Of a stretch of DNA of 64,000 bases, positions 45,429 to 64,000 are shown one piece after another. The stretch comes from Lytechinus pictus (lineage: Eukaryota), in NCBI RefSeq assembly GCF_037042905.1, contig NC_087259.1, forward strand, positions 22,754,001-22,818,000, in the 5' to 3' direction. The translations under genes were made by a program, and so were the position numbers. Every line of letters starts with the position of its first letter. Position 1 is the stretch's first letter. The notes below the pieces were generated by a model, which searched no databases, was not told the origin of the DNA, and saw nothing but the letters and a program-made list of their open reading frames with translations.

Positions 45429-47361
45429 TTTTCTGATGGAGTTCGAGTTTTAAGTTTGTTTGTTTTTTTCTCTTTTTTTGTTCTCTAAAAATCTCCAATC
45501 AATGTAGCTGATTTATTTGAAAGCTAAGAAAAAAGAAAGAAACTTTGTCACTCTTAGGTAGGATCATTTTATCATAATTTCTTTTTGCTACTGATTATAA
45601 ATGTGAACACGAATAATGTTGGTCTCCATTCGGAGAGGTCATGTTTTGATTTTAATACGCACTACTACAACATGAAACAATCTGTTATAATTGTCTTTAT
45701 GTTTGTATATATATGTATGTATCTATATGAAGTGTTACTTGTAGAACGTTACAATTTATGTCAAGCAATTCCCCCTTTTGGGGAATGCACAGGCATCTTT
45801 GGCGATTTGTTTTGTAATGTTAATAGTCTACATTGTCTTGTTTTTTCAAGGTACTTTATTAACAAACACAATTATGATAGGAGTGTTAAGAGGTCATGTT
45901 TTATCTGCCTTTAATATTTCAAATCCTAATGATATACGACAAGTGCTTGGCACTTTTTTACCAATGACAATACTTCACAGATTGGGATGTAGGCCTCTGA
46001 AAGGTATTCATGGACAAAGAATAGATTTTGAGAGTTCAGTAATTTGTATGCCCATATTGGAAGTCAGTATAGTTTCTTTTCATATGCAGCCTCTGGTTTT
46101 AAAGCAAACTCAGTATGCACATCAGTTTAGTCGTTATTCATGTAATTTGAATGATTGTTACATTCTCACGATTAGGCATATAATGAAAAAGATACACGTA
46201 CTATAATTCGAACGGGTGATTTTATAGTGTTTTCTAGTAGAATTATTCTTTTTCTTATAAAAATGCTAATTTTTAGCTACCGAAAGGAAATTTGGAGGAA
46301 TCTAATTATGTATATACACTTGAATCCACCTCTTCTTCTGGAATGTGATACATTGTTTCCTGGTTTAGATTATCACGATGATAAGGTATATTATCTTTCA
46401 CGCAATTCTTGGCTTTCAGTAAACTGTAAAGTCTGTAAACAATTCTTGCACACGAAATTCTTTGGACATGATATAAATACAGGTTGTTTTTGGTTTACAT
46501 GTTTGAATGAATGGGATTTTTTACATTGGCTTCAAAGCTCTCATAGGCAAAACATACCCAAGGTCTTTAAATTGCATTCTTACACAGTCATTCGACTGAC
46601 GAGTTTTTCAATTATTCAATTACCGCATTGTGTTAATGGAATGCATTGTATGATATTTCAACTAAACATGCTTCTCAATATCGAAGCCATGGTTCTTTCA
46701 CAAACGTTACATAATCAAATAGCAGTTGATTATGCACTTAGGGTTTGGATAATTTGGCGAATAAGCTTGTTATGCATGCTATCTAAAGTTTTTTACCGCC
46801 ATCTCTTAAGATACTTTAATACACCTTTGATTTATATTCAAATACTCCTTTTTCCAGTAGAAAGAATTTTTGAACTCCTCGTTATTGCAAATGTTTTAAT
46901 TGGGACTAACAGTCGGTCATTCATTGCGCATGCTTCCGGATGGAGTTTTTTTTACAAGGTCCATTCTCATGTTAAATCCTTCTTTAATTGCGATACTCTT
47001 GCCATGACCTTGTTGAAACGTATTCTCTTTGAATTATTCATGTTCACGAGATATACTTTGCCATGGCTTTCCATTCCGGTAAACTTTCCTATTTTCATTA
47101 CCCCGTATTTTTTATTCCAAAGTACAAAACTTCGGTTTTGTAAATCCAGCTTTGAGCTTTATGAGGTTGACAAATCAGGATGTCATATCTTTATGATTAT
47201 TAAAGAAACAAAGTTGAAATTTCTGTCGCTAAATGTAAGAGGCATAAGATCCAATTTTAATAGGAATAAAGTTTTTCATTGGCTGGAAGATATTAATGCA
47301 GATGTGATATTCCTGCAGGAGACATACAGCTCTGATGATATAACTAATCTTTGGTCGTCTC

Positions 47362-47927
47362 CCCGGGGGGGCCACTTACATTGACGAGTGGATACCATGC
47401 GCGACCAAAAAAACATGTATAAAGGATGCTTTTTTCAAGATAGGGCACGTTACGTACGTAACGTAATAAGTGTATCAAAAACACTAAAATAATGAAAAAA
47501 GGGTATCTATTTCGCTTGGAATGCTACGTGTTTAGGGTCAATTTTATGAGGGTGCAAAAAAAAAGTTTTATAAAGGATGTACTATTTTGGCACCAAGAGT
47601 CAACACTACGTGATTAGAGTACTAGACGATTTGCGCGAGATGTGGGAGGTGGGCTGCACTAAACCCAATGATGTAGGTAAAGGTAAAACCGACGTCTGTG
47701 ACATAACATTTGCTGTACTTGTTTAGGGGGTCAATTCAGGGAAAACTTGCCTAGAGTATCGATTTGTTTTCAATACTTGTTAAGGGTAGGGTTTCACACG
47801 CCAATACTTGTTAAGGGGTGCATTTTCAGAGTATAAAAAATATGTGTTTAGGGTGCTTTTCGAGACCCCATGGTCGCGCATGGTATCCACTCGTCAATGG
47901 AAGTGCCCCCCCCCCCCCCCCCCCCCG
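47362..47927. mobile_element. MITE with CCCGGGG..CACT termini and 7-bp TSD, inside the L1 endonuclease
   Basis: TIR CACTT(A/C)CATTGACGAGTGGATACCATGCGCGACCA; TSD TCGTCTC (47355-47361 and 47928-47934); removal restores LWSSQWKG. Confidence 0.92.
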
Positions 47928-48309
47928 TCGTCTCAATGGAAAGGGGACATTGTATTTTCCCACGGGTCCCGTCATAGTTGTGGAGTAACTATACTTTTTA
48001 AATATGACTTGAACTATACAATTTTATACAAGCAAATTTCGAGTGAAGGAAGGTTTATCCTTTTACGGGTTAATATAGATAATATAGATGATAATGAATA
48101 TATTTTATTGAACATATATATGCACCCAAGGCAGATAAACACGCAGATCAAAAACAATTCTTCAAGCAAATAAATGATAATCTGCTATCAATAAACGACA
48201 TAAAAACTATACCGGTTGTGTCGGTCTGTGATTGGGGGAAATTTTAATACCCGGTTAGATGTAGATTTGGATAGAATGGGTGGAAACCCTCACCTCCATA
48301 ATGACATAA

Positions 48310-50639
48310 GGGCATTTTCACCACAGATGGACACAGAGGCAAAAAAATCAAGTTCATATTCATGTCAAATGCTTTATGTTTTTTAATAAAACAAGACCTG
48401 AAGTTTCTGAGACAAAAATTTTTCCGACTCTGGCAGCCATTTTTTATTTCAAAATGGCTGCCAAAGTATGGATACAAATTAGTGTTGAAAATAGTATATT
48501 GATACATATTTTGTTTTGACAGATTTTTAAAGAACAGGTTTGATCATGATGTTTTCGCCTGTGATTTAGCTTGCTATTATAACACTTTTTAAAATCCCAC
48601 AGAAAGAAACACCAGTAATTCATTCATCTGATAAAAAACGTTGATGAAGTATGTGATATGATGTTATGTAATGTCAGTTACTGAAAACATGAACTTTTTT
48701 TTCTCATTTCCTGGAAAAGAGGATCTATTATATGAAACTTGGTAGATTTCCTCTCTCGGTAACACCCCTCCCTTCTACACCAAAATTAAAGATAACCAAT
48801 TAACAATGAAGCCATAGGGTACCATTAAATATATGTAATGTCAGTTACCAAGTGGAAAATGTAATGTCAGTTACCAAAATGTAATGTCAGTTACCATGAT
48901 AAAACATTGGTTACCAATATTGAAATGCAAATATGTGGTCAAATTTATGGTGAACAAATATTGTATACTTTTTATTTAAGTCTTTCACTTTAAAAGTCAC
49001 ACCAGAAGGAACTTGCTATTGACTTTTAAAAGGTATAGTTCACAAGGAATACTATATGAAATTATGAAGGAAATTGCGTACCCATCGTGCAAAAAAAATT
49101 ACTATGAAATTGTTTTGTACATGCACTTACCAAGTACCTAATTGTTTGTATCAGACAATTTTTTGTTTGGTTCGGGGGGGGGGGGGGTAGGGGGTACTTT
49201 TCCCAACCTATTGCCTAAATCTGCAACATTTTTTAAGCTTAACAATGTGATGAAGGGGATTTCCAGGGTCCCTTTTTTAGTTTCTAGGATTCTTTTGAGC
49301 ATTGCCTCGCTAAAAGTAAATTCCTGGTTTTTATACCTGTTAGTAGTGTGGATGTGTGATACAATTTTGTTTTTGGTTTACAAGTATAGATGAAAAGTGA
49401 AACTTGACAGTTCTGATCAATGTTGCATGGATCTACTAAAACTGGGGGTTTTTTTCGTCTAATTTACAAATACACTGTAGTTCAGTTTCAGTTTAGAAGC
49501 TGGAGTTTATTTTTTGTTGACAGCTTAAAAAAGAAATTAGCAAAGAAAATGATTAAACAAATTATGAAGAGAATTGAAATCCGACAGATATGAACAAGCA
49601 TTGCATGCACTGACCAGAATAGAAATCAATAAAACTACATGGTGCATGAGATTCGGGGGAGGGGTACGTGTAGCCTAGGGGAGGAGACCCTTATTCATTT
49701 TGCCTTTTTTGAGGAGGGGGAGGTTGGAGAAGGAAAGGTTTAAAAAGTCAATATAAAACTGATGAATATATTATGGGTGTATAGTCAGAAAAATCCATGT
49801 GTACAGTCAATGCAATATTGAATTACTATAGGAAAACATGTAGCTGCTATGACCCCACCCCCCCCCCCCCCCCCCCCCGTAAGTAAAACATACATTTCTT
49901 ATCTTTTTATCTTTTGATAATTAAAAATGTGAAGTATTATGAAACTTTTATGATTTTAAAAAGCCTTACATATAAGTACCAAGAAAATTATGCCTTTGAA
50001 AATCATATAGCACTGGTCAGTTACCGACAAGTAATGATAAAAATGTTCAAATCAAAGAAAGCAATTAAGAAAAAGAAAAAAAAAATTCATTAAAATGTTC
50101 CTAGAAAGAAACTCGAGGGTATACTTCCACATCAAGCTCACTTTCATGTGAAGCCCTGCACAGAAGATACAATGCAATGATTCCACACATTTGACTTCCA
50201 TGTGTTATCTCTATGGCAAATTAAGTGTAATGTCAGTTGCCGTAATGTCAGTTACCAGCATGGTTGTGGAAAAATTATCATAGCCCCCAAAAGACAAAAA
50301 TGAATTGTTAAATATTTTGACACATCTTAACCTAGTAACGGAGGTATATTTACATATTCAAATTTCTCTATCTACTCAGGGACATGAGATATTTCAATTT
50401 TAATGAACACCCTGAAATTGCATGTCCTTTTGCGTAATGTCAGTTACCGACACATTTTTGCTTGCTGATGCGTAAAAAAATGTGGTTACATAGGAAAACT
50501 TAGTATCAGAGTATACAGCAAGGTTCACTTTATTAACTCTATCAAAAGCAAACTCCCATCATTTGTTGTTTTAGAGATACACACAATGAAAGGTGTGAAA
50601 ACATTGTGCCGTGTAATGTCAGTTACCGTGAAAATGCCC
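48310..50639. mobile_element. Non-autonomous DNA transposon, Sola2-like
   Basis: 12-bp TIR GGGCATTTTCAC / GTGAAAATGCCC; 4-bp TSD ATAA; internal motif GTAATGTCAGTTACC repeated about 8 times; no ORF. Confidence 0.8.
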
Positions 50640-53600
50640 ATAAGTGATACTATTAATGAGATACAAAATAATTTTGATTTAGTTGATATTTGGAGACTAA
50701 GGAATCCGTTATTGAGGAGATACTTGGCGGCAATGCCATCCGTTAATACAAAGTAGACTTGATCTTTGGTTTATTTCTGATAATCGACAAGATTTCATAC
50801 AAAAAAATGATATTATACCCGGTGTGAGTTCAGATCATTCTGCAATTATACTTATTATCGAATTATCACAAAAGAAACGACCTTTGTCAATCAACTGGAA
50901 ATTTAATAATAGTCTTTTAGATGATGAACAGTCTCGTGTAGAAATGTCTGAAAATATAGACAATTGGATAACCGAATCGGTTCAATTTGAAGACATACGT
51001 ATGAGATGGGAATTTTTAAAATATAAAATCCGTTTATTCTCTAGGAAATATAGTATAAATAGAACTAAAATTTTAAGAGAGCAGAAAAGGGAGCTAGAAG
51101 GGAAATTAAAACGTCTTCATATTTTGGTGGATAAAGATGGTGAAAAATATGTTGACGAATATGAAAAGGCTAAGCTAGATTATGAAGCGCACATGGACCG
51201 TATAACTCATGGTATAATGGTCCGGTCCCACGCTATCTGGGTAGAATATGGAGAGAAAAACAGCAAATTCTTTTTAAACTTGGAAAAGGCCAAGAAGGCG
51301 AGATCAACAATATTAAACAGACTAAAAGTAGGGGATGAAATTTTAACCGATACTTTGAAAGTGAATACTCATATTAAGAATTTATATGCAAACTTATATA
51401 AAACAGAAGACCCCAAATCGTTTAGTAACTAATATACCCAAGTTATCGCCAAACCAGCGTGACTTATGCGAGAAAGAATGATCTCTTTCGGAATGCACTT
51501 CATCTCTATTTGCCATAGCTAAGAACAAATCACCCGGTAACGACGGAATAACCGTCAAATTTTATTGTCATTTTTGGAGCAAACTTGGACCGTTGGACGT
51601 AGATACTCTTAATTACAGTTTTGAACGAGGAATGATGTCTACGTCATTTTTTAAAAAAGCATTCAACTCATTGAACCACCAATTTTTGATAGAAGTTTTG
51701 AAATGTTTCAACTTTGGGAATAATTTTTGCAAGTTTGTCAGTGTTCTTTACAAAAACATTGAAAGCTGTGTGATGAATAATAACGTTTCAACTGGATATT
51801 TTACGGTCGGAAAAGGAATACGACAGGGGGATCCTTTATCTCCATATCTTTTTATATTAGCTGTAGAAACGCTAGCCATAAACATAAGAAAAAATGAAAA
51901 CATTCAAGGCATAAGATAAAAAATACTCATGAAATTAAGTTGTCTATGTACGCCGATGACATAACGGTTTATTTGTCAAAACTTTGAGTCGTATCATCAC
52001 CTCACGGAAGCTCTAAATGATTTTCAATTATGTTCATCACTCTCACTGAATTACGATAAGACGAAAGCAATGTTTATAGGACAATTCAATTTGCAAAACC
52101 CATCTATACCACTAGATATAAAGTTTTTTAACGTTTTGACAATTCTTGGAATCGACATCTCTTACTCTTTTGAGGATAGAATGGCGCAATTAAAAAGAAT
52201 TCTATCCAACATTAAATCTCAACTAAATTTATGGAAAGCCAGGAATTTATCATTATACGGGAAAATTCAAATTGTGAAAACTTTTGCTACCTCTCAGCTG
52301 TTATATGCAGCCAGCATATTATCTATACCTTATTCATTTATTCATAAGGTGAACACATTACTGTATGAATTCATTTGGGGTGGTCCTGATAGAGTAAAAC
52401 GTGAAGTGTTGGTTAAAGAATACGATGACGGGGGGTTAAAGATAACTTGCATCAAATCGATTATTCAAGCTCAGAAAATTAAATGGGTTTCGAGACTTTT
52501 CTCCTCAAATTCGAAGGGCTGGAAAGATATATGTATAGAATTGTTGTCACCTGTCGGTGGAGAATACATTTTTTATTGTAATTTTGATATGAAATATTTG
52601 AATATTGAAGTGTCAAATTGGTTGATGGACATTTTACAAACATGGTGTTTATTGGAAAGGAAAATAGATATTACCAATGAGTTTATATGGAACAATCAAT
52701 ATATCACATTTAAAGGAAAATCTATTTATAAACCAAACATAAAAGAAGAGGGATTCACTAAAATTACTGATATGTTAGATGAATTTGGACGTCCACTGCG
52801 CTGGAGGGAAGCGAAAGAAAAGGGTTTAAAGTTTACTGAGTATTTTGAATTGTTAGATTGCTATAAAATAATGCCAGAAAAATGGAAAGTTTTCTTTTTA
52901 CAACAAAACTACCATCATCTTGTAAAAGAACCTGGGGATTTCCCTTCTCTTTTCTGTGAATCTGCATTTAGACAAATTCACAATATATCGACTAAGCAAT
53001 TTTATCGCACTTTTTTAAATATTAATAACTCCGAAACCTCCAAGGTGTTTACTTGTTTTAATCAACTTTACAACATCAATAGGCAACAGACTTCCATATT
53101 GTTCACTCTTCCATTACGAATCACTATTGACACCAGACTTCGAATCACACACTATAAAATTTTAAATAACTTAATACCTACAAATGAATGGCTCACAAAA
53201 ACAGGAAAGAAAACCAATGCATTATGCTCTTTTTGCAATGCGACACCCGAGACATTGGATCATTTGTTTTTTGCATGCCCTAAAATAGCATCCTTTTGGA
53301 ATGCGTTGCGTATGAGAGTGACTGATTTTAATCCTAATTATTTCCTTTCACGAGATCCTATTTTATTTGGATTACTAGAACCGTTAAGTCAATCCACCTT
53401 AGCATTTAATTTTCTAATTTTACTTGGTAAACAATTCATTTTGCGATGTAAATACCAATAGACTCTCCCTAGTTTGAAACAATTTAATTATTATCTTTTA
53501 TCTTATAAAGTTACTGAGGAAATTATTGCAAAAAAGAAAAACAAACTCAATAAACACAATGTAAAATGGCAAAACATAAACAATTATTTTTCCATTGCAT

Positions 53601-54416
53601 AAATTGTAACCACTGTAGATTAGCATTTTGTGTTAATCGTCTTTTTGTGTGTTTGTTTTATCTTCTGTTCATGTTGTAGAGGTGTTTCTTATGTCATATT
53701 TTCGGTCATGTTAATACATTAAAATGTCATATTTTTTTTGGTTGCACTATACCCCGGCCATGTCGCCAGGACGACAATGGACCGACGGGTATTACCGTAC
53801 CCCTTTTCTTTTTTGGTTAATGGGTCATCCTGTCGGCAGGACTAGGGTACAAGTTGCTATTCTGAGTACACAATTTATTTAGGATATGTTGTATGTACTT
53901 ATAACACAGTTTGTATCAATGTTCTGTTTGATTGAAGTGCAACGATATGTTTTGTATATGTTGATTGTTTTTGTGATGAATAAAAACTGCAAAGATGAAA
54001 AAAATAATAGTTTTTTTTTTTTAAAGATGTTTTATTGTTTTTCTCTCAAATCAAATTTCATACAACGCAGTTTATAAAGTAACAAATGTAAATAATAATT
54101 CAAACAAATAGTGCGCCTCAGAAGAGATTATTTCTAGATAGATGATGGTAATGATAATAGTATGTATTCATATAGCGAATAATATGATCTCCATAGATGT
54201 GATTTTCATATTGGCCTACATTACAATAGATATCGGATGAATTATTTGAGTTTCATTAAATTACAATATTATTCTACACTATATGGTGATTATTAGTTTG
54301 CGCTAGATTATTATACAGTGCACTTTACATAAATGCCTCTATCAATTATTGAATTATTAGTATTATTATCATACATTTGCTTCATAGGAACACCATTTTG
54401 AAGTAAAACAGGAGAT

Positions 54417-54513
54417 ATGGCAAGAGGGCAGGAAAGAGCTGAGGAAATCCAGCGAGAATTATTCAGAGATATTTGCAATGAAGTAACAGACCGGGAACTG
54501 GATCTTATAAAAC
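54417..54513 (+). CDS. DED-caspase gene, coding exon 1 (DED start)
   Basis: Acceptor TTCATAG at 54387, ATG at 54417, MARGQERAEEIQRELFRDICNEVTDRELDLIK, donor GTAAGA, phase 1. Confidence 0.78.
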
Positions 54514-55630
54514 GTAAGAGTTTATTTTGGTGCCTGTGTTATGCAATATTGTTATTATCAGTATCTTGATTTATTGGAAATAACAGGCTTTGTCATTTGG
54601 CAGCAAATTCAGGGAGATACAAAGTTTCAATACAGTATTTTGTACTGCCCCAACTACTATGTTTCTTCATTATTTTTTTATCAGTACTGATCTATGAGTA
54701 TGAGACATAAACATTTAACGTCAATGGAAGTTACTTTAACATGGAAAAGATCTATTATTGGAAAGAGTTCGCTAAATCGCATCAGCCATCCTAACCCTTT
54801 GGCTGTCGCAAAAGGATCTCTTCCCATTTCTATATCTCCAGCTAATGCAGTAAAGGTTTGCAATTTTGAAGGAAAGTTCTTTCAATTAATTATTCAATAT
54901 TTTCAAAGATAAATAATTATTTTTGCCATAGATGCATTTTCTTCATTTGTGTAACAGATTTTATAACTTATAAACCATTCTGAAGTTTTTATTTAGCATG
55001 AGTGCATTCTACTACCTGAATATCTATGATATAATATTTATAATACCTGCCATAGAGAGAACTTTCATATGTTCAAATTTCTGAACATACACTGCAGCCA
55101 TTGTTTGGAATGCACTTCCAAAAGAAATCAACAAAATCAGTAATTTTCATGTTTATAAAAGGGAGCTATAGTCATATCTGTTAACAAATATTTAATGACA
55201 ATCAAGTTTTTACTCTTCACTTAACATGTTTGTAGCACACTTTGTAAAATTATTTTAATAGTATTTTTATACTGGTCTAAAAGTTGTCTATTCTAAAAAC
55301 ATAGATTTATTCAATATCCCTGCACAGCCATGGTATTAAAGTTCAATTTTTTTTTTTGCAGTGATTCCATTAGATTACTTTTTTAAAATGTAAAATGAAT
55401 GCCCCTTCTGTGTTTGTAATTATCTTCGTCTTTGAATACATTATATTTATTGTAGTAAATTTGTATCTTTCATTTCAATGGGAATGAATAAATCTTGAAT
55501 TTGTGAGTGAGTGGGTGGGTCGGTCGGTGAGTGAGTGAGTGAATAACCATTATTCAGATTGTGAACCATTCTTCATAACTTGAATGTATTCTCCTTATTT
55601 ATTGTGTCCATGTAATCTTTTCTTCTATAG

Positions 55631-55740
55631 AGGAACTTAAACAAAAAGCCTTTGGTGGATTCAAATCTGGGGAAATTGAAAGGGAGCTGAAAACAACAAA
55701 TGATATTTTAGAAAAATTAAAGAGAAAAGGTTTAATCAAA
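55631..55740 (+). CDS. DED-caspase gene, coding exon 2
   Basis: CTATAG|..|GTAAGT; QELKQKAFGGFKSGEIERELKTTNDILEKLKRKGLIK; phase 1 in, phase 0 out. Confidence 0.82.
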
Positions 55741-56499
55741 GTAAGTATGGTAAAATATATTATTTATTCTTTCATGTGAAACTGTTCTTAAGTTATAAAA
55801 AAATGTTTTCAACTTTATTGCACATTATAACCGTTAGCAGGGTTCATGTAATATGGCTATTATACAGTGCGTCCCAGAAAAAAGGAAAGCAGGGTTCCCA
55901 TGTCTTTATTCTTCAAAGACAAGTGAATTATGATATTTCATTTACCCAAATCATACATATCAATTATTATTCCTCTAGATTTTGATACCTAATAATAAAA
56001 GAAAAACTCTTCACGCTTTAATGAGCAAGACGAGTTTGACATTTTAATGTGAAAATCAGAATCCACAAAAAAATTGGACATCATTGGTTCTTGATAAAAC
56101 AACCGTGCTTATTCGACGAATGGCTCATTAGCATTTCTTTTGTATTTGTTAAGTTTCTCTCACTGATTCCTGAAATGAGAGTTGATTCATATTCACACTT
56201 GAATTTCTGCGCAAATCATTTATGATATGCCTCAATATTTCTTGTTTCCAAATTGCCATGCATGAACAATTTGCTAAGCTTTTGGTTTCAAATTAAGATT
56301 CCACTCTTACCATGAGTATCAAATTGATAGTATGGTAAGGTCCCCCAAGTCTGTGCAGTCCCCCTTGTCTGGGCACACGCGTATCTGCACGATTCTATAG
56401 AGAAGATATAATGCAACAAACACTATTCTAGGTCTCTGGAAACCTGTGTCTTTTGCACCACAATGTGAACAAGTATAGTAAGAAATATTGACCCGTTTA

Positions 56500-57656
56500 T
56501 TTGTCTCGCCCACCAGAGACGAAGGCGAGACTTAGGGATTCGTTAAAGTTTACATGCAGGTCAACGTTAAAGTTTACATGCAAGACTCTCCTATGACACC
56601 TAACTCCGCAACCGTAAGTCACTTTTCAACCAAACTTGGATGGTAGATGGACTTGAGGGACCTGCATATTATGCTGCAGTCGGAGGTCACATGGTAAGGT
56701 CAAAGGTCATTTTCAGGTCAACGTTTAAGTTTACATGCAAGACTCTCTTATGACACCTAACTCCACAACCGTAAGTCACTTTTCAACTAAACTTGGATGG
56801 TAGATGGACTTAAGAGACCTGCATGTTATGCTGCAGTCGGAGGTCACATGATAAGGTCCAAGGTCATTTTTAGGTCAATGTTAAAGTTTACATGCAGACT
56901 CTTATGACACCTAACTCCGCAACCGTAAGTCACTTTTCAACCAAACTTGGATGGTAGATGGACTTGGGGGACCTGCATGTTATGCTGCAGTTGGAGGTCA
57001 CATGGTAAGGTCAAAGGTCATTTCCAGGTCACCGTTAAAGTTTACATGCAAGACTCTTATGACACCTTACTCTGCAACTGTAAGTCGCTTTTCAACCAAA
57101 CTTGGATGGTAGATGGACTTGGGGGACCTGCATGTTATGCTGCAGTCAGAGGTCACATGATAAGGTCCAAGGTCATTTTTAGGTCAATGTTAAAGTTTAC
57201 ATGCAAGACTCTTATGACACCTAACTCCGCAACCATAAGTCACTTTTCAACCAAACTTGGATGGTAGATGGACTTGGGGGACCTGCATGTGATACTGCAG
57301 TCGAAGGTCACATGGTTAGGTCAAAGGTCATTTTCAGGTTAATGTTAAAGTATACATGCAAGACTCTCTTATGACACCTAACTCTGCAACCGTAAATCAC
57401 TTTTCAACCAAACTTGGATGGTAGATGTACTTAGGCGACCTGCATGTTATGCTGCAGTTGGAGGTCACATGGTAAGGTCAAAGGTCATTTTCAGGTCAAC
57501 ATTAAAGTTTACGTGCAAGGCTCTTATGACAAGTGTTATTCCATCCCAGTCATTTCACAATGAAGTTTTGATACAATTTTGTTTTGTACCCTCGCAAATC
57601 ACGATATTTCTGGTTATTTTCATTAGTGGGCGAGACACAAAATCGCTTTTGCCTTG
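56500..57656 (+). mobile_element. Helentron/DINE-like non-autonomous element with ~6 x ~155-bp tandem array
   Basis: Subterminal inverted repeat TGTCTCGCCCAC / GTGGGCGAGACA, short 5' stem-loop, central tandem units starting near 56566, 56725, 56881, 57035, 57190, 57345 and 57502. Confidence 0.75.
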
Positions 57657-57737
57657 TGATACTAACTGATTTATTATATTTTATTGATGTTTTTATATGG
57701 GACATGTCAACAAGATTACTGAATTATTGACAATATC

Positions 57738-58009
57738 AGGGCCCCGCCTTGCAAAGAGTTACAATTGATCCAATCAATCTCAACTGTATGGAAATCCATC
57801 CAGAACATAATTTTTTCTACATGAAATTTGCACAATCTTAGTAAACAAAGAGAATCGCACTGAATCTTCAAGAGAATGGTGAATGTATGAATATGCATCA
57901 TATCTAGAAAATATTTTGAACAAATTTGCATTTTAGATGTTGACGTTGCTGGCTGTCCATAGTTGTGGTTGATCGGATTAATCGCAACTCCTTGTAAGAC
58001 AGGGCCCTG
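57738..58009. mobile_element. MITE
   Basis: CAGGGCCCCGCCTTGCAAAGAGTTAC ... GCAACTCCTTGTAAGACAGGGCCCTG inverted ends. Confidence 0.7.
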
Positions 58010-58450
58010 GAATCCAGATTCCTTACATTATTTTCTGCTATGTCTGGCAAGCTTTCAAGTTGTCAAGAATAAACTTTGTACAAAGTGTTTGCATGAAATT
58101 TTACTTTGCGAATAATGGTCCATTTGCTAGAAGCAGGACTCGCTATTGCCAATCTATATTAGAACATGAGGCTTGAGAAACTGCTCAGACTGTCAAAAAA
58201 GAGGAAAAAAAATACTTTGCAATTATAATCTGAGATTGGAAACAGAGTGAATTGTACATTTTTTTACTTGTGACCATCCTGCACTGAACAAACCGTGGCT
58301 ATAACACTGCTTGTTATATTCTAATGTTATTATCATACACTCTCCTGTCAGCATCCTAATCATTATTTTTTCATATTGTAGTATATCGTAGTACGTAATT
58401 CTGAAGTTCTTCATTTTCATGTATCTTGTTATTGTCATTGCATCGCACAG

Positions 58451-58550
58451 ATTGGTGATTATGTAATATTACATAAGCTTGCAGGAGCTATAGAGTCACA
58501 GCCTCTATTGGATTATGTAGCTAAAGCAGAGAACTCATTGGTTGCAATAC
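58451..58550 (+). CDS. DED-caspase gene, coding exon 3 (DED end)
   Basis: CACAG|..|GTAAGT; IGDYVILHKLAGAIESQPLLDYVAKAENSLVAI; phase 0 in, phase 1 out. Confidence 0.8.
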
Positions 58551-58777
58551 GTAAGTTGTGCCACTGTACACTCTTATTACAATAGCTGAAAGTATTTGGA
58601 TTATACGATGAAATCCAAGAATTGTGCTTTTGTGTATTTAGCGTAATTGTGTTCGAAGCACGAATTTCGCCAGATCACACTTTGGTATTTCTCTTAGGAT
58701 AATATAATTATGTAAAACAGGTAATAGGAACACGAGTGATTTTGCCATTTCATTTTTTTCAAAATGATAGTGACATT

Positions 58778-58930
58778 TGGGGCCCATTGCAGAAAAAATT
58801 GCAATCAATCGCAACTCTAAAAATCAGGCGCAACTTGATTTTCAACCAATCAACAGCCCGCATTTGGGACTTGCGATTGGTTTTTTTTCTTGCGTTTTTA
58901 AAATGCAACTCTTTCTGCAACGTTCCCCAG
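58778..58930. mobile_element. Small MITE
   Basis: TGGGGCCCATTGCAGAAA ... TTTCTGCAACGTTCCCCA. Confidence 0.6.
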
Positions 58931-59188
58931 GTTCAATTTATTTTGGTAATGATCTGTACCACATACAGTAACTTCTACTATCAAATGATGGCAAATAGAA
59001 TTCATATATACCGATTTTTACCCAAAAATGAAATTTAGTGTGGATTCATGAATACTATTTTTTGTGAATGGTCAAAACATATTTTCTGTCTAGTAACCTA
59101 CTAAAGTTTATCATCTGATTTTGCATTGGGATCTGATAAACATGGTCTGGATGGTATATAACTTACTTGATTACGTTTGATGTTCCAT

Positions 59189-59790
59189 ATTTATGCCCGC
59201 GCAGACAAAGTCCGGAGGGGGCTTTAAGCGTTGCCCCTGGCCGTCTATCCTTCCGTCTATCCGTCCGTCCCCCCACTTGGTTTTCGCGCAATAACTCGAA
59301 AAAAATATGTAATGGATTTTTAAAAATTTTGGTTTGTAGGTACATGTAGATGACACTAAAATACAGGCCAAGTTCAAATTCAGAGTCCGCAGATCCAAGG
59401 TCAAAGGTCACAGCTCATTAAATATGCGAGTTGGTTTCCACATGATAACTTTGAAATATTTGACGGATTTAAAAAGTTTGTGGTGTGTAGGTAGATGACA
59501 CCAAAATACAGGCTAAGTTCGGAGTCCGGAGGTCAAAGGTCACAGCTCTTTAAATATGTGAGTTGGTTTTTGCATGATAACTTATTAAATATTCAACAGA
59601 TTTTTAAAAATTGGGATGTGTAAGTAGATGACACCAAAATACAGGCTAAGTTCAAATTAGGAGTCCGCAGGTCAAAGGTCACAGCTCATTAAATATGCGA
59701 GTGGGTTTCTGCATGATTACTTTTGAAATATTCACCAGATATTAAAAATGTTTGGTGTCTGGGTAGATGTCATCAAAATACAGTGAGGTC
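59189..59790 (+). mobile_element. Helentron/DINE-like element with (GTCC)n and ~120-bp tandem units
   Basis: TTTATGCCC.. head, ccgtctatccgtccgtcc microsatellite, 3-4 copies of gtagatgacaccaaaatacaggctaagttc..ggtcaaaggtcacagctc. Confidence 0.65.
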
Positions 59791-59908
59791 ACATCAAATG
59801 ACCTGACTGTGATATCTTCTGTCAGAGATTATTATGGAAATGGTGAGTCTTTAGGTCAAAGTTTAAATGTGTTCATTATATATATGCAGTATTGGTTTCT
59901 GCACGATA

Positions 59909-60310
59909 TTAAAGCTAAATGAGCGTAGTTGCAGTAAAACACTGATTTCGTGAGAAAGTCTGTAAAACCAAGGTAAAGTATTGATATATCATCGTGGATC
60001 TAGATCTGGTACAGTTACATAAACTGAACTTTGTGAAATCATAATATCTAGCTAAAAAACGATCACACTGAAGATTGCCAACACAGATAGGCACACGTGG
60101 GACAGTGTATTATTATTGCTGGAATAAAGACCCGACGGAAGTGACCGAATCCGCGCTTATTTTGCTTATTTCTCAGCAATTACACAATTTCTTCCAGAAT
60201 CCTTTGGCACATATTTTTTATTCATACGAACAGACACTTTGGTGATCATTATATTAAATTCTGTAAAAAGTCATTTTGAGATCGTTCCCAAAACTGGAAT
60301 TTATCTTTAA
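59909..60310. mobile_element. MITE (Kolobok-like), copy 2
   Basis: TTAA at both ends; similar to 44309-44696. Confidence 0.82.
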
Positions 60311-61086
60311 GTTCAATCATATTGAATGAATTTCTGATCTCGCTAAGCGGGGTCATCTGTGTTCTTTGGACACGTCAAATTTCTAGTTTTCATATGATTT
60401 TTCTTGTGAATTCTTTGATCACTAAATTGGAAAAATCTCATTATGAGTTTGAATAGAATCCAATAAAATGACCACCCAAGTGTTTGTATGTTATAAGAAA
60501 AGGGATATGCCGATTGTTCCAGGTAGAGAATGCATAATTGTTGAGAAATAAACAAGTTATTAAGCAAAGTTACTTGTAGGTCTGGACACAAAGTTTCCAT
60601 ACTTATCCTGATCGAGGGTGATGTGGTTATGATCGTCATTGATTTTAATGCTCTTTTTTTTTATTATCATTGTTTGCTGTATTTGCTGCCATTTTGATAT
60701 TTTCTATGTATCTTGCCTTCTTCATGGTACAGTTGAAAGTGGACTATTAAAGTGGACTATTCTCATGTAGATGTTTATACATGTTCTGAGGTAATACAGT
60801 CATTTGTCTGTCCCTCAAGATAAGAGAGAATACATTTTCAGCCCTCACACTATTTAGTGCTCATCTTGGCAAGGTGATTTTTTTTAATCTCCGTATTTAG
60901 AAATACTCTCGGTAATAGTGGAACGAAGCAAGGCAGTCGAGGCCGGCACCCAAGCTGATTGCCTTCGTTGCGTTTGTTTAAAACAAGCCATGGTTGATAT
61001 TGATTGTAGTATTTAAGAATGAGCACAATATCAATACCCGCTTGCAAAGTGTTAATTTGTTTCGCTTTTTTCTCTCCATTTTATAG

Positions 61087-61491
61087 AGTGGCCTGTGAAG
61101 CAGCCAAAGACCGATCCCTCTCAAGAAAGCCCGATGCTTGGAGCAGTTGGCTATGGAGCATATGGTGGGCACCATGCCCAGTTCCCAGTGCAAAATACTC
61201 GTCCTCCACCCCCTTACCATCATTATGATGACCCTCAACCCTACCAGCCTACGATGGGACCCCCTCAGCATCAGGCTCCTCGTCGCCAGCAGCACCGTCA
61301 GTTCCAAGATAGCCCCACGAGAACACCACATCAGCAGCCTGGCGCACCTACCCAACAGAATCCCTATCAACAGGGTGGTGTAGCGCCCTCTCAGTTGGCC
61401 CAACCTATAACCGATCCCCACTATTCACACCAAGATGGTGGGAGTAGTACCCATCCGCAGCCCGCTTTCCCACAGTACACTCCCTCGTCAG
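61087..61491 (+). CDS. DED-caspase gene, coding exon 4 (Pro/Gln-rich linker)
   Basis: Strong pyrimidine tract + TATAG acceptor; QWPVKQPKTDPSQESP..YTPSS; donor GTGATT; phase 1 in and out. Confidence 0.8.
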
Positions 61492-62179
61492 GTGATTTTT
61501 TTTCATAATTTCTAACATTTGCTTTAATAGCCCAAGTCACTACCCCTTATGAAGCTGAGAGCAGTTCACTCATATACATCCATAATATGTCTTTCAGAAA
61601 TCAAGCCTCTCAGGATTTTTGCTTCCTTTGGCAAGTGCTAGTTAAATAATTCATTAAATCTCTATTTGGTACATATGAATGATAATGATAACAAAATGAA
61701 TATTTGAGCCAAACATTCATTTGAGCCAAAACAGTAGCCAAAGTTACTAAATATTTATAATATGCATATTAATTAATTAAATATTGATAAAAATAATTAA
61801 AAACTACTAGCCTACTCATTTGGTAAACATTATTTTTTTTTTTTCAGACCTACTTTTCACAACCTACTGGGCCTAATAAATCTGCAACTTTGCATAAGCG
61901 TGAATATTGCAATGAATGATGAAGGCCTCTTTATTTTCCAGGGCTCTTTTTGAGTTTTCTGGGGGCGAAACCGCCCTGAGCCCCATGTAACTATTTTCCC
62001 TGTCACTCAGTGTTAGTTAATCATAATTCATGTTAGTAGATTTTGGATAAAAATCAAGGATTGAATGCAAGAAAAGTACTTATACACTATATCCTTCTCA
62101 TTGAACTCACACTAAGCTTTCACAAAAGTCAACAGCTCAACAAATACTCTTTAATATTTCCCACTTTTCTACGACACAG

Positions 62180-62347
62180 CCGAGATGCAATTAAGATCAG
62201 GCTCATCCTCAAGCCGAAGCCATGATGACGTATTCTTGCCAGAACGACGGAATATTTCGTTTGATAATCGCACCGAGTATGAGCCAGGACCTGGATATGT
62301 TCTCTTCATCAACAACATGTTCACCAGGCAACCAGATTACCGCAGGG
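62180..62347 (+). CDS. DED-caspase gene, coding exon 5 (start of caspase p20)
   Basis: CACAG|..|GTAAGA; ..PGPGYVLFINNMFTRQPDYRRG matches the caspase GxxLIINN..RxG motif. Confidence 0.88.
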
Positions 62348-63385
62348 GTAAGAACAGCATAGATGTGCCCAGCCACCCCAAAACCAACAATTAGTTGCCA
62401 GAGACAGTTCTCTGTCAGTAACAAAAATTATTATTTGGTCTTCACAAAGAAAACAAATAGGAAATTACCTTATCTGAAAGATTAATTCTTCTTCATTATA
62501 CGGTCAAAATTTGAAGTTGTAAAATTGAATAAAATACAAGATACAAAAGTTGCTGTGACACTAGTATTTTTGTGGACTGCTTGGGAGTTTGGCTGAGATT
62601 GTATAGTGTGCACATAGACTCTTTAGTGAACCCCAAACTTCAAACATTGTTTTCTCCTTATATTTCAAAGATGTCACTTGGTGTCTTCTGCATTCATTCA
62701 AGTACTTGTTTGGGTTATTGGTGATCAATTTTTACAAGTTATATATTATCAAATACCTTAGGATGTGCTCTTTCAAACTCGATAAAAATTGCAAAATTCA
62801 TTTTGGGCACCTGTTGTTTGTTTAGAGGTAGCTGGTCACATATGATGATAATTTGATGCATTTTAATGGATATTCTAATTTTTGCGACCCAAAGGGTAGA
62901 GCTGCATGATGAAGGGTATCATGAGTAGGCAATCTTATCCCCATGAATAATTTACATACCATTTTTGCTTCAAAGGCTGACATATGCCTTTTTTATAATA
63001 TTATAAGATGTGCTGTATCACCACTCAAATATCCTCAGCAGTATTTTAAATACGCAACATATAATTTACCCCTGTTGCAGAGAATGATTCACCCGTGTCA
63101 CAGAGTATTTTATCAAATCATCTTTCCTATTATAAACTTCAAACATGATTAGTATTAGTTTGATATTAAACCATGAAATGAAACAAAGAAATGAATGTGG
63201 GAATTTTGTTCAGATTTATTTGTTCCTATGATCAAAGAGCAGGAGTGGCAGCAACATACATGTAGCATGCAATATACCACCAGCATGACTGCTAGGAGCA
63301 GCTAGGGTTGCGGTAGAGGCTAGCTAGGTACAATCAAGATTTGTTGACCAATCATTTCACCTTCTTTTCTTCTATGCATGTTCAG

Positions 63386-63600
63386 GTGCTGAAGTTGATG
63401 AGAGGAATGTTCGTAATCTTTTTTCAAATACCCTGAAGGGTTACTTCTTGCAGTATATTAAAGATGTAACGTGTGAAGAGCTCAAGGGTTACTTGGAGTC
63501 CTTGAAGGACACCCTCTCAACGGGCATCTACAAGAGCTTCATCCTAATTCTTGGAACACACGGTGAACCAAAGATGGCTGACAGCAACAAGTCCATGAAG
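63386..63600 (+). CDS. DED-caspase gene, coding exon 6 (catalytic His); gene continues beyond the window
   Basis: TTCAG|..|GTAATC; GAEVDERNVRNLF..DVTCEEL..SFILILGTHG, the caspase (S/T)HG motif; not in the ORF track. Confidence 0.88.
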
Positions 63601-63625
63601 GTAATCACTGAATTATTATAAGGAG

Positions 63626-63710
63626 AGGTGTTGTGCCTCCGTGGATAAGTCTCCAGACTTTGAATCACAAGGTCCGGGGTTTGATCCCCAACACAGCATT
63701 TGTGTCCTTT
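63626..63710 (+). mobile_element. tRNA-derived SINE head, truncated by the next element
   Basis: Degenerate A box, GACTTTGAATC, GGTTTGATCCCC B box, GTGTCCTT. Confidence 0.6.
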
Positions 63711-64000
63711 TTGTCCACCAGAGGTGAAGGCGAGACTTACATGTAGGGATCCAAATGTCGTCTGTCCGTCACAAACCTAATGACACATAACTCCACAACC
63801 GTAAGTCGCTTTTCAACCAAACTTTGATGGTAGATGGACTTGGGGGACCTGCATGTTATGCTGCAGTCGGAGGTCACATGGTAAGGTCAAAGGTCATTTT
63901 CAGGTCAACGTTAAAGTTTACATGCAAGACTCTTATGACACCTAACTCCGCAACCATAAGTCACTTTTTAACCAAACTTGGATGGTAGATGGACTTGGGG
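63708..64000 (+). mobile_element. Second copy of the Helentron-like ~155-bp array element, runs off the window
   Basis: CCACCAGAGGTGAAGGCGAGACTTA head and the same tandem unit as 56500-57656. Confidence 0.8.

Follow-up and report, generated by a model that had tools for sequence, protein, structure and literature searches.

Outside vertebrates, a caspase that carries a death effector domain (DED) is usually equated with caspase-8 in work on extrinsic apoptosis. A gene of the sea urchin Lytechinus pictus, at the end of a 64,000-nucleotide (nt) stretch of the 812-Mb genome, raises the question of what kind of caspase it is when only one such domain is evident. The stretch, C15:22754001-22818000 (contig NC_087259.1 of assembly GCF_037042905.1), is referred to here as the window, and positions given without a contig name count from its first letter. 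The gene lies on the plus strand and is predicted to encode a single N-terminal DED, a long linker and a caspase protease domain. We interpret it, with a probability of roughly three in four, as the one member in L. pictus of a long-prodomain caspase family that is old among bilaterians, in which a protease of the active type would be combined with a regulatory DED that acts outside the death-inducing signaling complex (DISC).

The sea urchin has two separate genes, a canonical caspase-8 with tandem DEDs and a QACQG active site and a single-DED caspase with an effector-like protease, the latter conserved from annelids to amphioxus. The spliced model of 524 amino acids (aa) is letter for letter the NCBI protein "cell death protein 3-like [Lytechinus pictus]" (P0153). 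The gene is already annotated, and it is the DED that is missing from the public record: only PF00656 is precomputed for the urchin proteins of the family, with no DED entry, and the public names "cell death protein 3-like", "caspase-1" and "caspase-3-like" omit the domain in urchins. Correcting this matters for inventories of apoptosis genes. Moreover, L. pictus is a genetic model with one copy of the gene, every exon matching this locus alone genome-wide, and therefore offers a clean system for studying the partners of the DED and the function of the family.

A family of single-DED caspases separate from caspase-8

An earlier note on this DNA, made from the letters alone, had proposed a lineage-specific initiator caspase or caspase-like regulator of unusual architecture. 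Comparison with other animals overturned the first attribute, since the same architecture and a monophyletic catalytic domain extend from echinoids to amphioxus, Lingula, a nemertean, an annelid and a bryozoan. Relatives of the same architecture were found among the echinoids in L. variegatus, Strongylocentrotus purpuratus (three genes on one chromosome) and Diadema, in starfish and a crinoid, and outside the echinoderms in two hemichordates, in Branchiostoma, in the brachiopod Lingula, in the nemertean Tubulanus, in the annelid Owenia and in the bryozoan Watersipora. A narrow distribution holds only for the form with a long linker rich in proline and glutamine (P/Q-rich), which we found in echinoids and in one transcriptome protein, P0010. 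The architecture is unusual relative to vertebrates, as proposed; an amphioxus example had already been published in 2011 (PMC3196919).

All echinoderm, hemichordate and amphioxus members gave one match per protein to a hidden Markov model (HMM) of the family DED, and the family DED HMM scored E 1e-16 to 1e-42 in members. Within the clade, Tubulanus polymorphus (P0117/P0163) has gene isoforms with two family-type DEDs. A Lingula MetaClust entry (P0161) carries a near-identical duplicated DED and looks like a model artifact.

In maximum-likelihood (ML) trees the family formed one clade with support of 100/98, and of 99/94 once more taxa were included. Deuterostome branching within it follows the species tree, with amphioxus first, then hemichordates, then echinoderms. 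The vertebrate caspase-3/7 proteins grouped with L. pictus genes on C18 and C4, away from the single-DED clade, and L. pictus caspase-8 also fell outside it; the catalytic domains of the nine or ten other L. pictus caspase loci were rebuilt approximately from exon-level HMM matches, with short exons missing, after a homologue search with the Tubulanus tandem-DED protein P0117 had yielded no reference sequences named caspase-8. The family catalytic HMM gave at least 238 bits in the original members and 206-277 bits in amphioxus and Owenia proteins found later, and no more than 194 bits in the clade members from Tubulanus and in all other caspases that were scanned. Membership of the gene in an old bilaterian single-DED caspase clade is thus well supported by these comparisons, and in these trees the clade lies apart from the tandem-DED caspase-8 and the caspase-3/7 genes of L. 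pictus.

The most serious alternative is that the gene encodes a caspase-8-type apical initiator of the extrinsic pathway, which would dock through its DED on the DED of FADD in a death-receptor complex and be activated by induced proximity. The long prodomain with a DED fits such a role, as does a genome that encodes FADD, and the best solved matches of the DED profile are caspase-8 DED2 and FADD. The gene also resembles caspase-8 and caspase-10 in joining a DED prodomain to a caspase domain and in the sequence KPKVF before the active site. There is precedent for the name as well, because single-DED caspases have been called caspase-8 in molluscs, a single low-scoring DED having been noted in the mussel "caspase-8" (PMC3037946).

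Several results nonetheless make this alternative unlikely. L. pictus has a separate, canonical caspase-8 gene (C1:9510310-9520511), with DED1 in one exon (RYDL, LKYLC), a weak DED2 and catalytic exons carrying QACQG. Caspase-8 has tandem DEDs, RxDL in each, a phenylalanine/leucine (FL) patch and QACQG, whereas the gene in the window, with a single DED, carries SQPL and QSCRG, lacks the FL patch and belongs to a separate clade. L. pictus FADD lies at C18:24274182-24276983 on the minus strand, and its DED exon (C18:24276504-24276755) carries both FKFLC and RKDL; the genome's best death-domain match (78 bits) lies about 2 kb downstream of that exon.

The surfaces by which FADD and caspase-8 DEDs engage one another provide a direct comparison. 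The equivalent of RxDL had been read in the earlier note as SQPL, and this is borne out by alignment with four other L. pictus DEDs, those of FADD (RKDL), caspase-8 DED1 (RYDL), a DED protein on C13 and a DEDD-like protein, all of which have RxDL where the single DED has SQPL (aa 85-88; 58496-58507). Across the aligned family, RxDL was found in no member of any phylum. On helix 2, the FL patch is replaced by polar residues, with IKQEL in place of FKFLC (FADD) or LKYLC (caspase-8 DED1). Both this patch and the E/D-RxDL triad are missing family-wide, suggesting that the DED is probably off the canonical FADD/caspase-8 filament interfaces; the family has conserved DED positions of its own (K32, G46, G71, Y73, L76 and E96). 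In addition, sequence matches rank the catalytic domain beside caspase-3/7, and in the trees it stays apart from caspase-8. A constraint that united the clade with caspase-8 cost 13 log-likelihood units and was marginally rejected by the approximately unbiased (AU) test (p 0.034), for groups that were named after the tree had been seen.

Work on amphioxus bears on the same point. Xu et al. (2011, BMC Biol 9:60; PMC3196919) cloned bbtCaspase3-like, in which a DED prodomain is joined to a caspase-3/7-like domain whose active site reads QSCRG. This nuclear protein killed HeLa cells whether or not the DED was present, and neither bbtFADD2 nor the ASC proteins tested came down with its prodomain in co-precipitation (PMC3196919). 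A prodomain of the same design is therefore neither bound to these partners nor needed for killing, which argues against a caspase-8-type role; nuclear localization and DED-independent killing were shown for amphioxus only. The urchin gene shares with bbtCaspase3-like the single N-terminal DED, the caspase-3/7-like protease and QSCRG. Three Branchiostoma proteins (P0135, P0175 and P0176) have the same architecture and group with the urchin gene in the clade, but differ from it in carrying QACRG or QACRR and a linker rich in serine and acidic residues instead of a P/Q-rich one. In a 2024 survey of lophotrochozoans, two Owenia DED caspases fell outside the main DED-caspase group, and the relationships of metazoan DED caspases were called unclear (PMC11463336). 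The literature examined contains the architecture but no description of the urchin member, of the loss of RxDL and the FL patch throughout the family, or of the P/Q-rich linker of echinoids.

The N-terminal domain

That the N-terminal domain belongs to the DED class is not obvious from the L. pictus protein alone. The Pfam DED profile (PF01335) aligned to aa 13-96 over profile positions 2-80 of 82, at 13-17 bits (13.4-17.5) against a gathering score of 35.9, and at 13-19.5 bits across the urchin proteins scanned. With aa 1-108 as a single sequence, a search of Protein Data Bank (PDB) sequences found no DED, only spurious helical matches, and P0010 has a weak PYRIN match (E 0.09). These results leave some room for another death-fold class (CARD, PYD or death domain) or a generic helical bundle.

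The relatives that can be aligned end to end with the domain decide against such a reading. The Pfam cut-off is passed by P0008 from Patiria (37.3 bits) and by the Logan transcriptome protein P0010 (38.5 bits), and a DED is precomputed for the family proteins P0011 and P0038. A family profile built from 17 N-termini matched only DEDs over its full length among PDB sequences, namely caspase-8 DED2 (E 1.2e-5) and the FADD DED (1.6e-4). Designed PPR repeat proteins filled the top rows of the same search and were discarded, their scores being sums of insignificant repeats.

Structure prediction gave the same answer. An AlphaFold2 model made with the family alignment showed six helices at a mean predicted local distance difference test (pLDDT) score of 86.5, beginning with helices at residues 2-22 and 25-35. 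In a Foldseek search of the PDB, ranks 1-18 were all DEDs (FADD, PEA-15, caspase-8 and cFLIP). The best match was FADD, with a template modeling (TM) score of 0.86 and a root-mean-square deviation (rmsd) of 1.6 A, and the first PYD came at rank 26 with an rmsd of 5.5 A. By profile and by model, then, aa 1-105 form a true but divergent six-helix DED, in agreement with the single divergent death-fold domain suggested earlier, and we regard a different fold class as quite improbable.

The protease domain

Residues from about 271 to 524 form a complete caspase protease domain that keeps the His-Cys dyad and both S1 arginines. Peptidase_C14 (PF00656) matched the full protein at 151.5 bits against a cut-off of 21.4, from aa 276 and over profile positions 2-232 of 233. 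The active-site cysteine, which had been expected beyond the end of the window, is present there as QSCRG (aa 403-407; C15:22821259-22821429). Arg292, His352 (in THG), Gln403 and Cys405 (both in QSCRG) and Arg457 align to caspase-3 Arg64, His121, Gln161, Cys163 and Arg207, and the GSWF loop is also conserved in alignment with caspase-3. The sequence SLSD418|S aligns with the caspase-3 activation site IETD|S, and Asp418, the predicted cleavage site, is at least 90% conserved.

Among solved structures, the 60 best sequence matches were all caspase-3 or caspase-7, from E 8e-26, so that the domain appears most like effector caspase-3/7, and more so than caspase-8. The likeness to these enzymes extends to the residues of catalysis and of the S1 pocket and to where the inter-subunit Asp site lies. 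It ends at the prodomain: caspase-3 and caspase-7 executioners have about 25 aa and no death-fold domain, whereas the urchin protein has a 270-aa prodomain with a DED, and L. pictus has its own caspase-3/7-group genes on C18 and C4.

The earlier note had also allowed for a caspase-like regulator. A catalytically dead protein of the cFLIP (CFLAR) kind, competing for DED partners, would likewise be a DED-containing caspase homologue. In its favor, the DED is divergent, and the p20 half is diverged enough that exon 6 gave no Pfam match on its own (exon 5 alone gave noise only). Yet in cFLIP the DEDs stand in tandem and the catalytic Cys and His are absent, whereas the urchin protein keeps both residues together with Gln403, the two S1 arginines and the GSWF loop. 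His352, Cys405, Arg292 and Arg457 are invariant in 20 family members, pointing to selection for catalysis. With the catalytic residues kept and the full protein scoring as a peptidase, a cFLIP-like dead enzyme is excluded on sequence grounds, and we give this possibility almost no weight. The product is most likely an active Asp-specific protease made as a zymogen.

Gene structure and transcripts

Splicing of the window sequence reproduced exactly the six-exon chain read earlier, with GT donors throughout, AG acceptors on every exon except exon 1, which opens at the ATG, and phases of 1, 0, 1, 1, 1 and 0 after exons 1-6. The stop-free translation is 365 aa long and ends in THGEPKMADSNKSMK. The start given for the gene, position 54388, has to be revised: it is an acceptor-like site in the 5' untranslated region (UTR), and the coding sequence (CDS) begins at the ATG at 54417. 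The 5' UTR part of the first coding exon (54388-54416, plus strand, as are all exons) contains an in-frame TGA at 54399-54401 just 5' of the start codon, as read directly from the sequence.

Coding exon 1 (54417-54513; aa 1-32) runs from the ATG to a GTAAGA donor in phase 1 and encodes the first DED helix with the beginning of the second. Exon 2 (55631-55740; aa 33-69; AG acceptor, GTAAGT donor, phase 0) encodes helices 2-4, and at C15:22809630-22809755 the S. purpuratus paralogue matched it at the exon level. Exon 3 (58451-58550; aa 70-102) encodes helices 5-6 with the SQPL motif. The disordered linker rich in proline, glutamine and tyrosine occupies exon 4 (61087-61491; 405 nt; aa 103-237), and exon 5 (62180-62347; 168 nt; aa 238-293) encodes the end of the linker and the start of the large subunit, with its first beta strand and the S1 arginine in YRRG. 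Exon 6 (63386-63600; aa 294-365) continues the large subunit to the catalytic His in THG (63556-63564). Exons 4 and 5 are both phase 1-1 symmetric, so that in-frame skipping or exchange is possible.

The gene runs past the end of the window. In the next 10 kb, Pfam-positive open reading frames and AG/GT sites in matching phase define three more exons: exon 7 (C15:22819711-22819798); exon 8 (C15:22821259-22821429), which carries QSCRG and SLSD; and exon 9 (C15:22822206-22822426), which ends in a TAA stop. The complete product of 524 aa is thus encoded in nine exons over 14 kb.

We aligned RNA-type Logan assemblies of L. pictus from two studies over 58400-63650. Spliced contigs from the two independent studies contain the joints 58550>61087, 61491>62180 and 62347>63386, all GT..AG, so that exons 3-4-5-6 are joined at the predicted sites. 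The three joints are carried by contig X1 (2676 nt) and contig X15 (1178 nt), and about 27% of the words of 61087-63600 are present in the assemblies, near the exon fraction. Since the exons match this locus alone, the spliced contigs cannot be accounted for by a retrocopy. The gene is transcribed, and its splicing follows the prediction.

Two outcomes would have spoken against the single-DED architecture, a second DED exon in transcripts or upstream exons unjoined to the caspase exons, and neither was seen, exon 3 of the DED being joined to exons 4-5-6 in single contigs. In X1, exon 3 occupies positions 332-431, with 331 nt upstream, 207 nt of them coding sequence of exons 1 and 2, and with 1456 nt downstream of exon 6, which fits 480 nt of CDS and a 3' UTR of about 1 kb. 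The overall layout fits a 124-nt 5' UTR, a 1578-nt CDS and the 3' UTR of about 1 kb. The 5' end of X1 has no room for a second DED, which would take about 240 nt in addition, and the TGA at 54399-54401 closes the frame, so that no upstream DED-coding exon could be joined in frame through exon 1. A model artifact, in which two neighboring genes were wrongly joined or a second DED exon was missed, might be suspected from the long (1.1-2.7 kb), repeat-filled introns and from a DED split over three small exons when DED1 of L. pictus caspase-8 lies in one, but it is already largely refuted by these contigs, by the in-frame stop before the ATG and by the same N-terminus with one DED in orthologues from three other urchin genera and four other phyla, and we consider it negligible.

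The linker

The 135 aa encoded by exon 4 are 20% proline, 18% glutamine and 6% tyrosine, as the low-complexity linker of about this length had been described. In the full-length AlphaFold2 model, pLDDT is below 50 at aa 112-259 and 410-435 and high elsewhere, and the linker is accordingly predicted to be disordered. P/Q-rich linkers of 120-165 aa are common to Lytechinus, Strongylocentrotus, two Diadema proteins and P0010. Shorter linkers rich in serine and acidic residues occur in the starfish, crinoid, hemichordate, amphioxus and Lingula members, and the linker of Diadema P0154 is much shorter. P0010, from a 2412-nt contig of Logan SRR27871391, has QACRG and a 149-aa linker rich in proline, glutamine and tyrosine with PPAY. 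Its place in the tree, close to the crinoid and echinoid members, suggests that the long P/Q linker may predate the echinoids.

Every long linker has exactly one PPxY motif, in the form PPPY, PPQY, PPHY or PPAY; in L. pictus it is PPPY at aa 143-146 (61206-61217). Composition-matched shuffles contained PPxY in 10-30% of cases per linker, so the motif is only a lead.

The linker position is occupied differently in the S. purpuratus paralogue P0005 (LOC100891245), where a death domain (Pfam Death, E 9e-4) replaces the P/Q linker. In its DED and protease domain P0005 is like the other members, as a close paralogue that is 49% identical to S. purpuratus P0003 and to the L. pictus protein; a genome search showed that L. 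pictus has no such copy. Together with amphioxus bbtCaspase-1/2 it represents the DED and death-domain caspases, and its design parallels that of the amphioxus DED and death-domain caspase also described in PMC3196919.

Proposed mechanism

We propose that the protein is a zymogen that would be activated by cleavage at the conserved inter-subunit Asp418, whether through self-cleavage upon clustering or through the action of an upstream caspase. The active protease would cut after Asp and have effector-like properties. The DED may serve as a regulatory or recruitment module and would not be part of a caspase-8-type DISC filament. The tether, residues from about 106 to 270, is presumably flexible and would space the DED and the protease domain, and in echinoids its PPxY could be a handle for WW-domain proteins, either ligases of the Nedd4/Itch type or proteins of the YAP type.

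Several observations weigh against parts of this interpretation. Loss of the FL patch and RxDL is no proof that FADD binding has been lost, and the PPxY motif could be a by-product of linker composition. The deep nodes of the clade are weak in our trees, with the caspase-8 sister relation rejected only marginally, and forcing the clade together with the caspase-3/7 group was not rejected (AU p 0.19). The closest described analogue is bbtCaspase3-like, which is likened to the urchin gene by its description; one of P0135, P0175 and P0176 may correspond to the published clone. Finally, raw reads of two 2026 RNA runs (6% sampled), which were uninformative on transcript ends and strand, gave almost no depth on the exons, suggesting that expression is low or restricted in those samples.

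A bolder extension of the same interpretation is that the gene represents an ancient second lineage of bilaterian DED caspases that was lost in vertebrates, with a DED partner other than FADD or caspase-8 and, in echinoids, a functional PPxY motif that would place the protease under the control of a WW-domain ubiquitin ligase or a Hippo-pathway protein. We regard this combination as speculative and rather doubtful. If true, it would represent an input to cell death that has no vertebrate counterpart.

Repeats in and around the gene

Directly upstream of the gene lies a decayed LINE (non-LTR retrotransposon; 46227-53461, plus strand), with endonuclease-like and reverse-transcriptase-like open reading frames in several frames. 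The same 157-bp satellite (6.3 copies, 90% alike) occurs in intron 2 (56557-57531) and in intron 6 (63780-64000, continuing to about L004:1750). Intron 3 contains a 139-bp tandem repeat of 3.2 copies (59346-59783).

Scans of 54000-64000 with Rfam and for tRNAs gave nothing above threshold, including at an element of intron 3 (59900-60350) that displayed extreme RNA abundance. Contig word depth there reached about 30,000, and raw-read depth was 80-500 at single positions (bin means to about 380), with the first mate mostly on the minus strand. Its many variant positions and loose ends suggest a multi-copy transcribed repeat.

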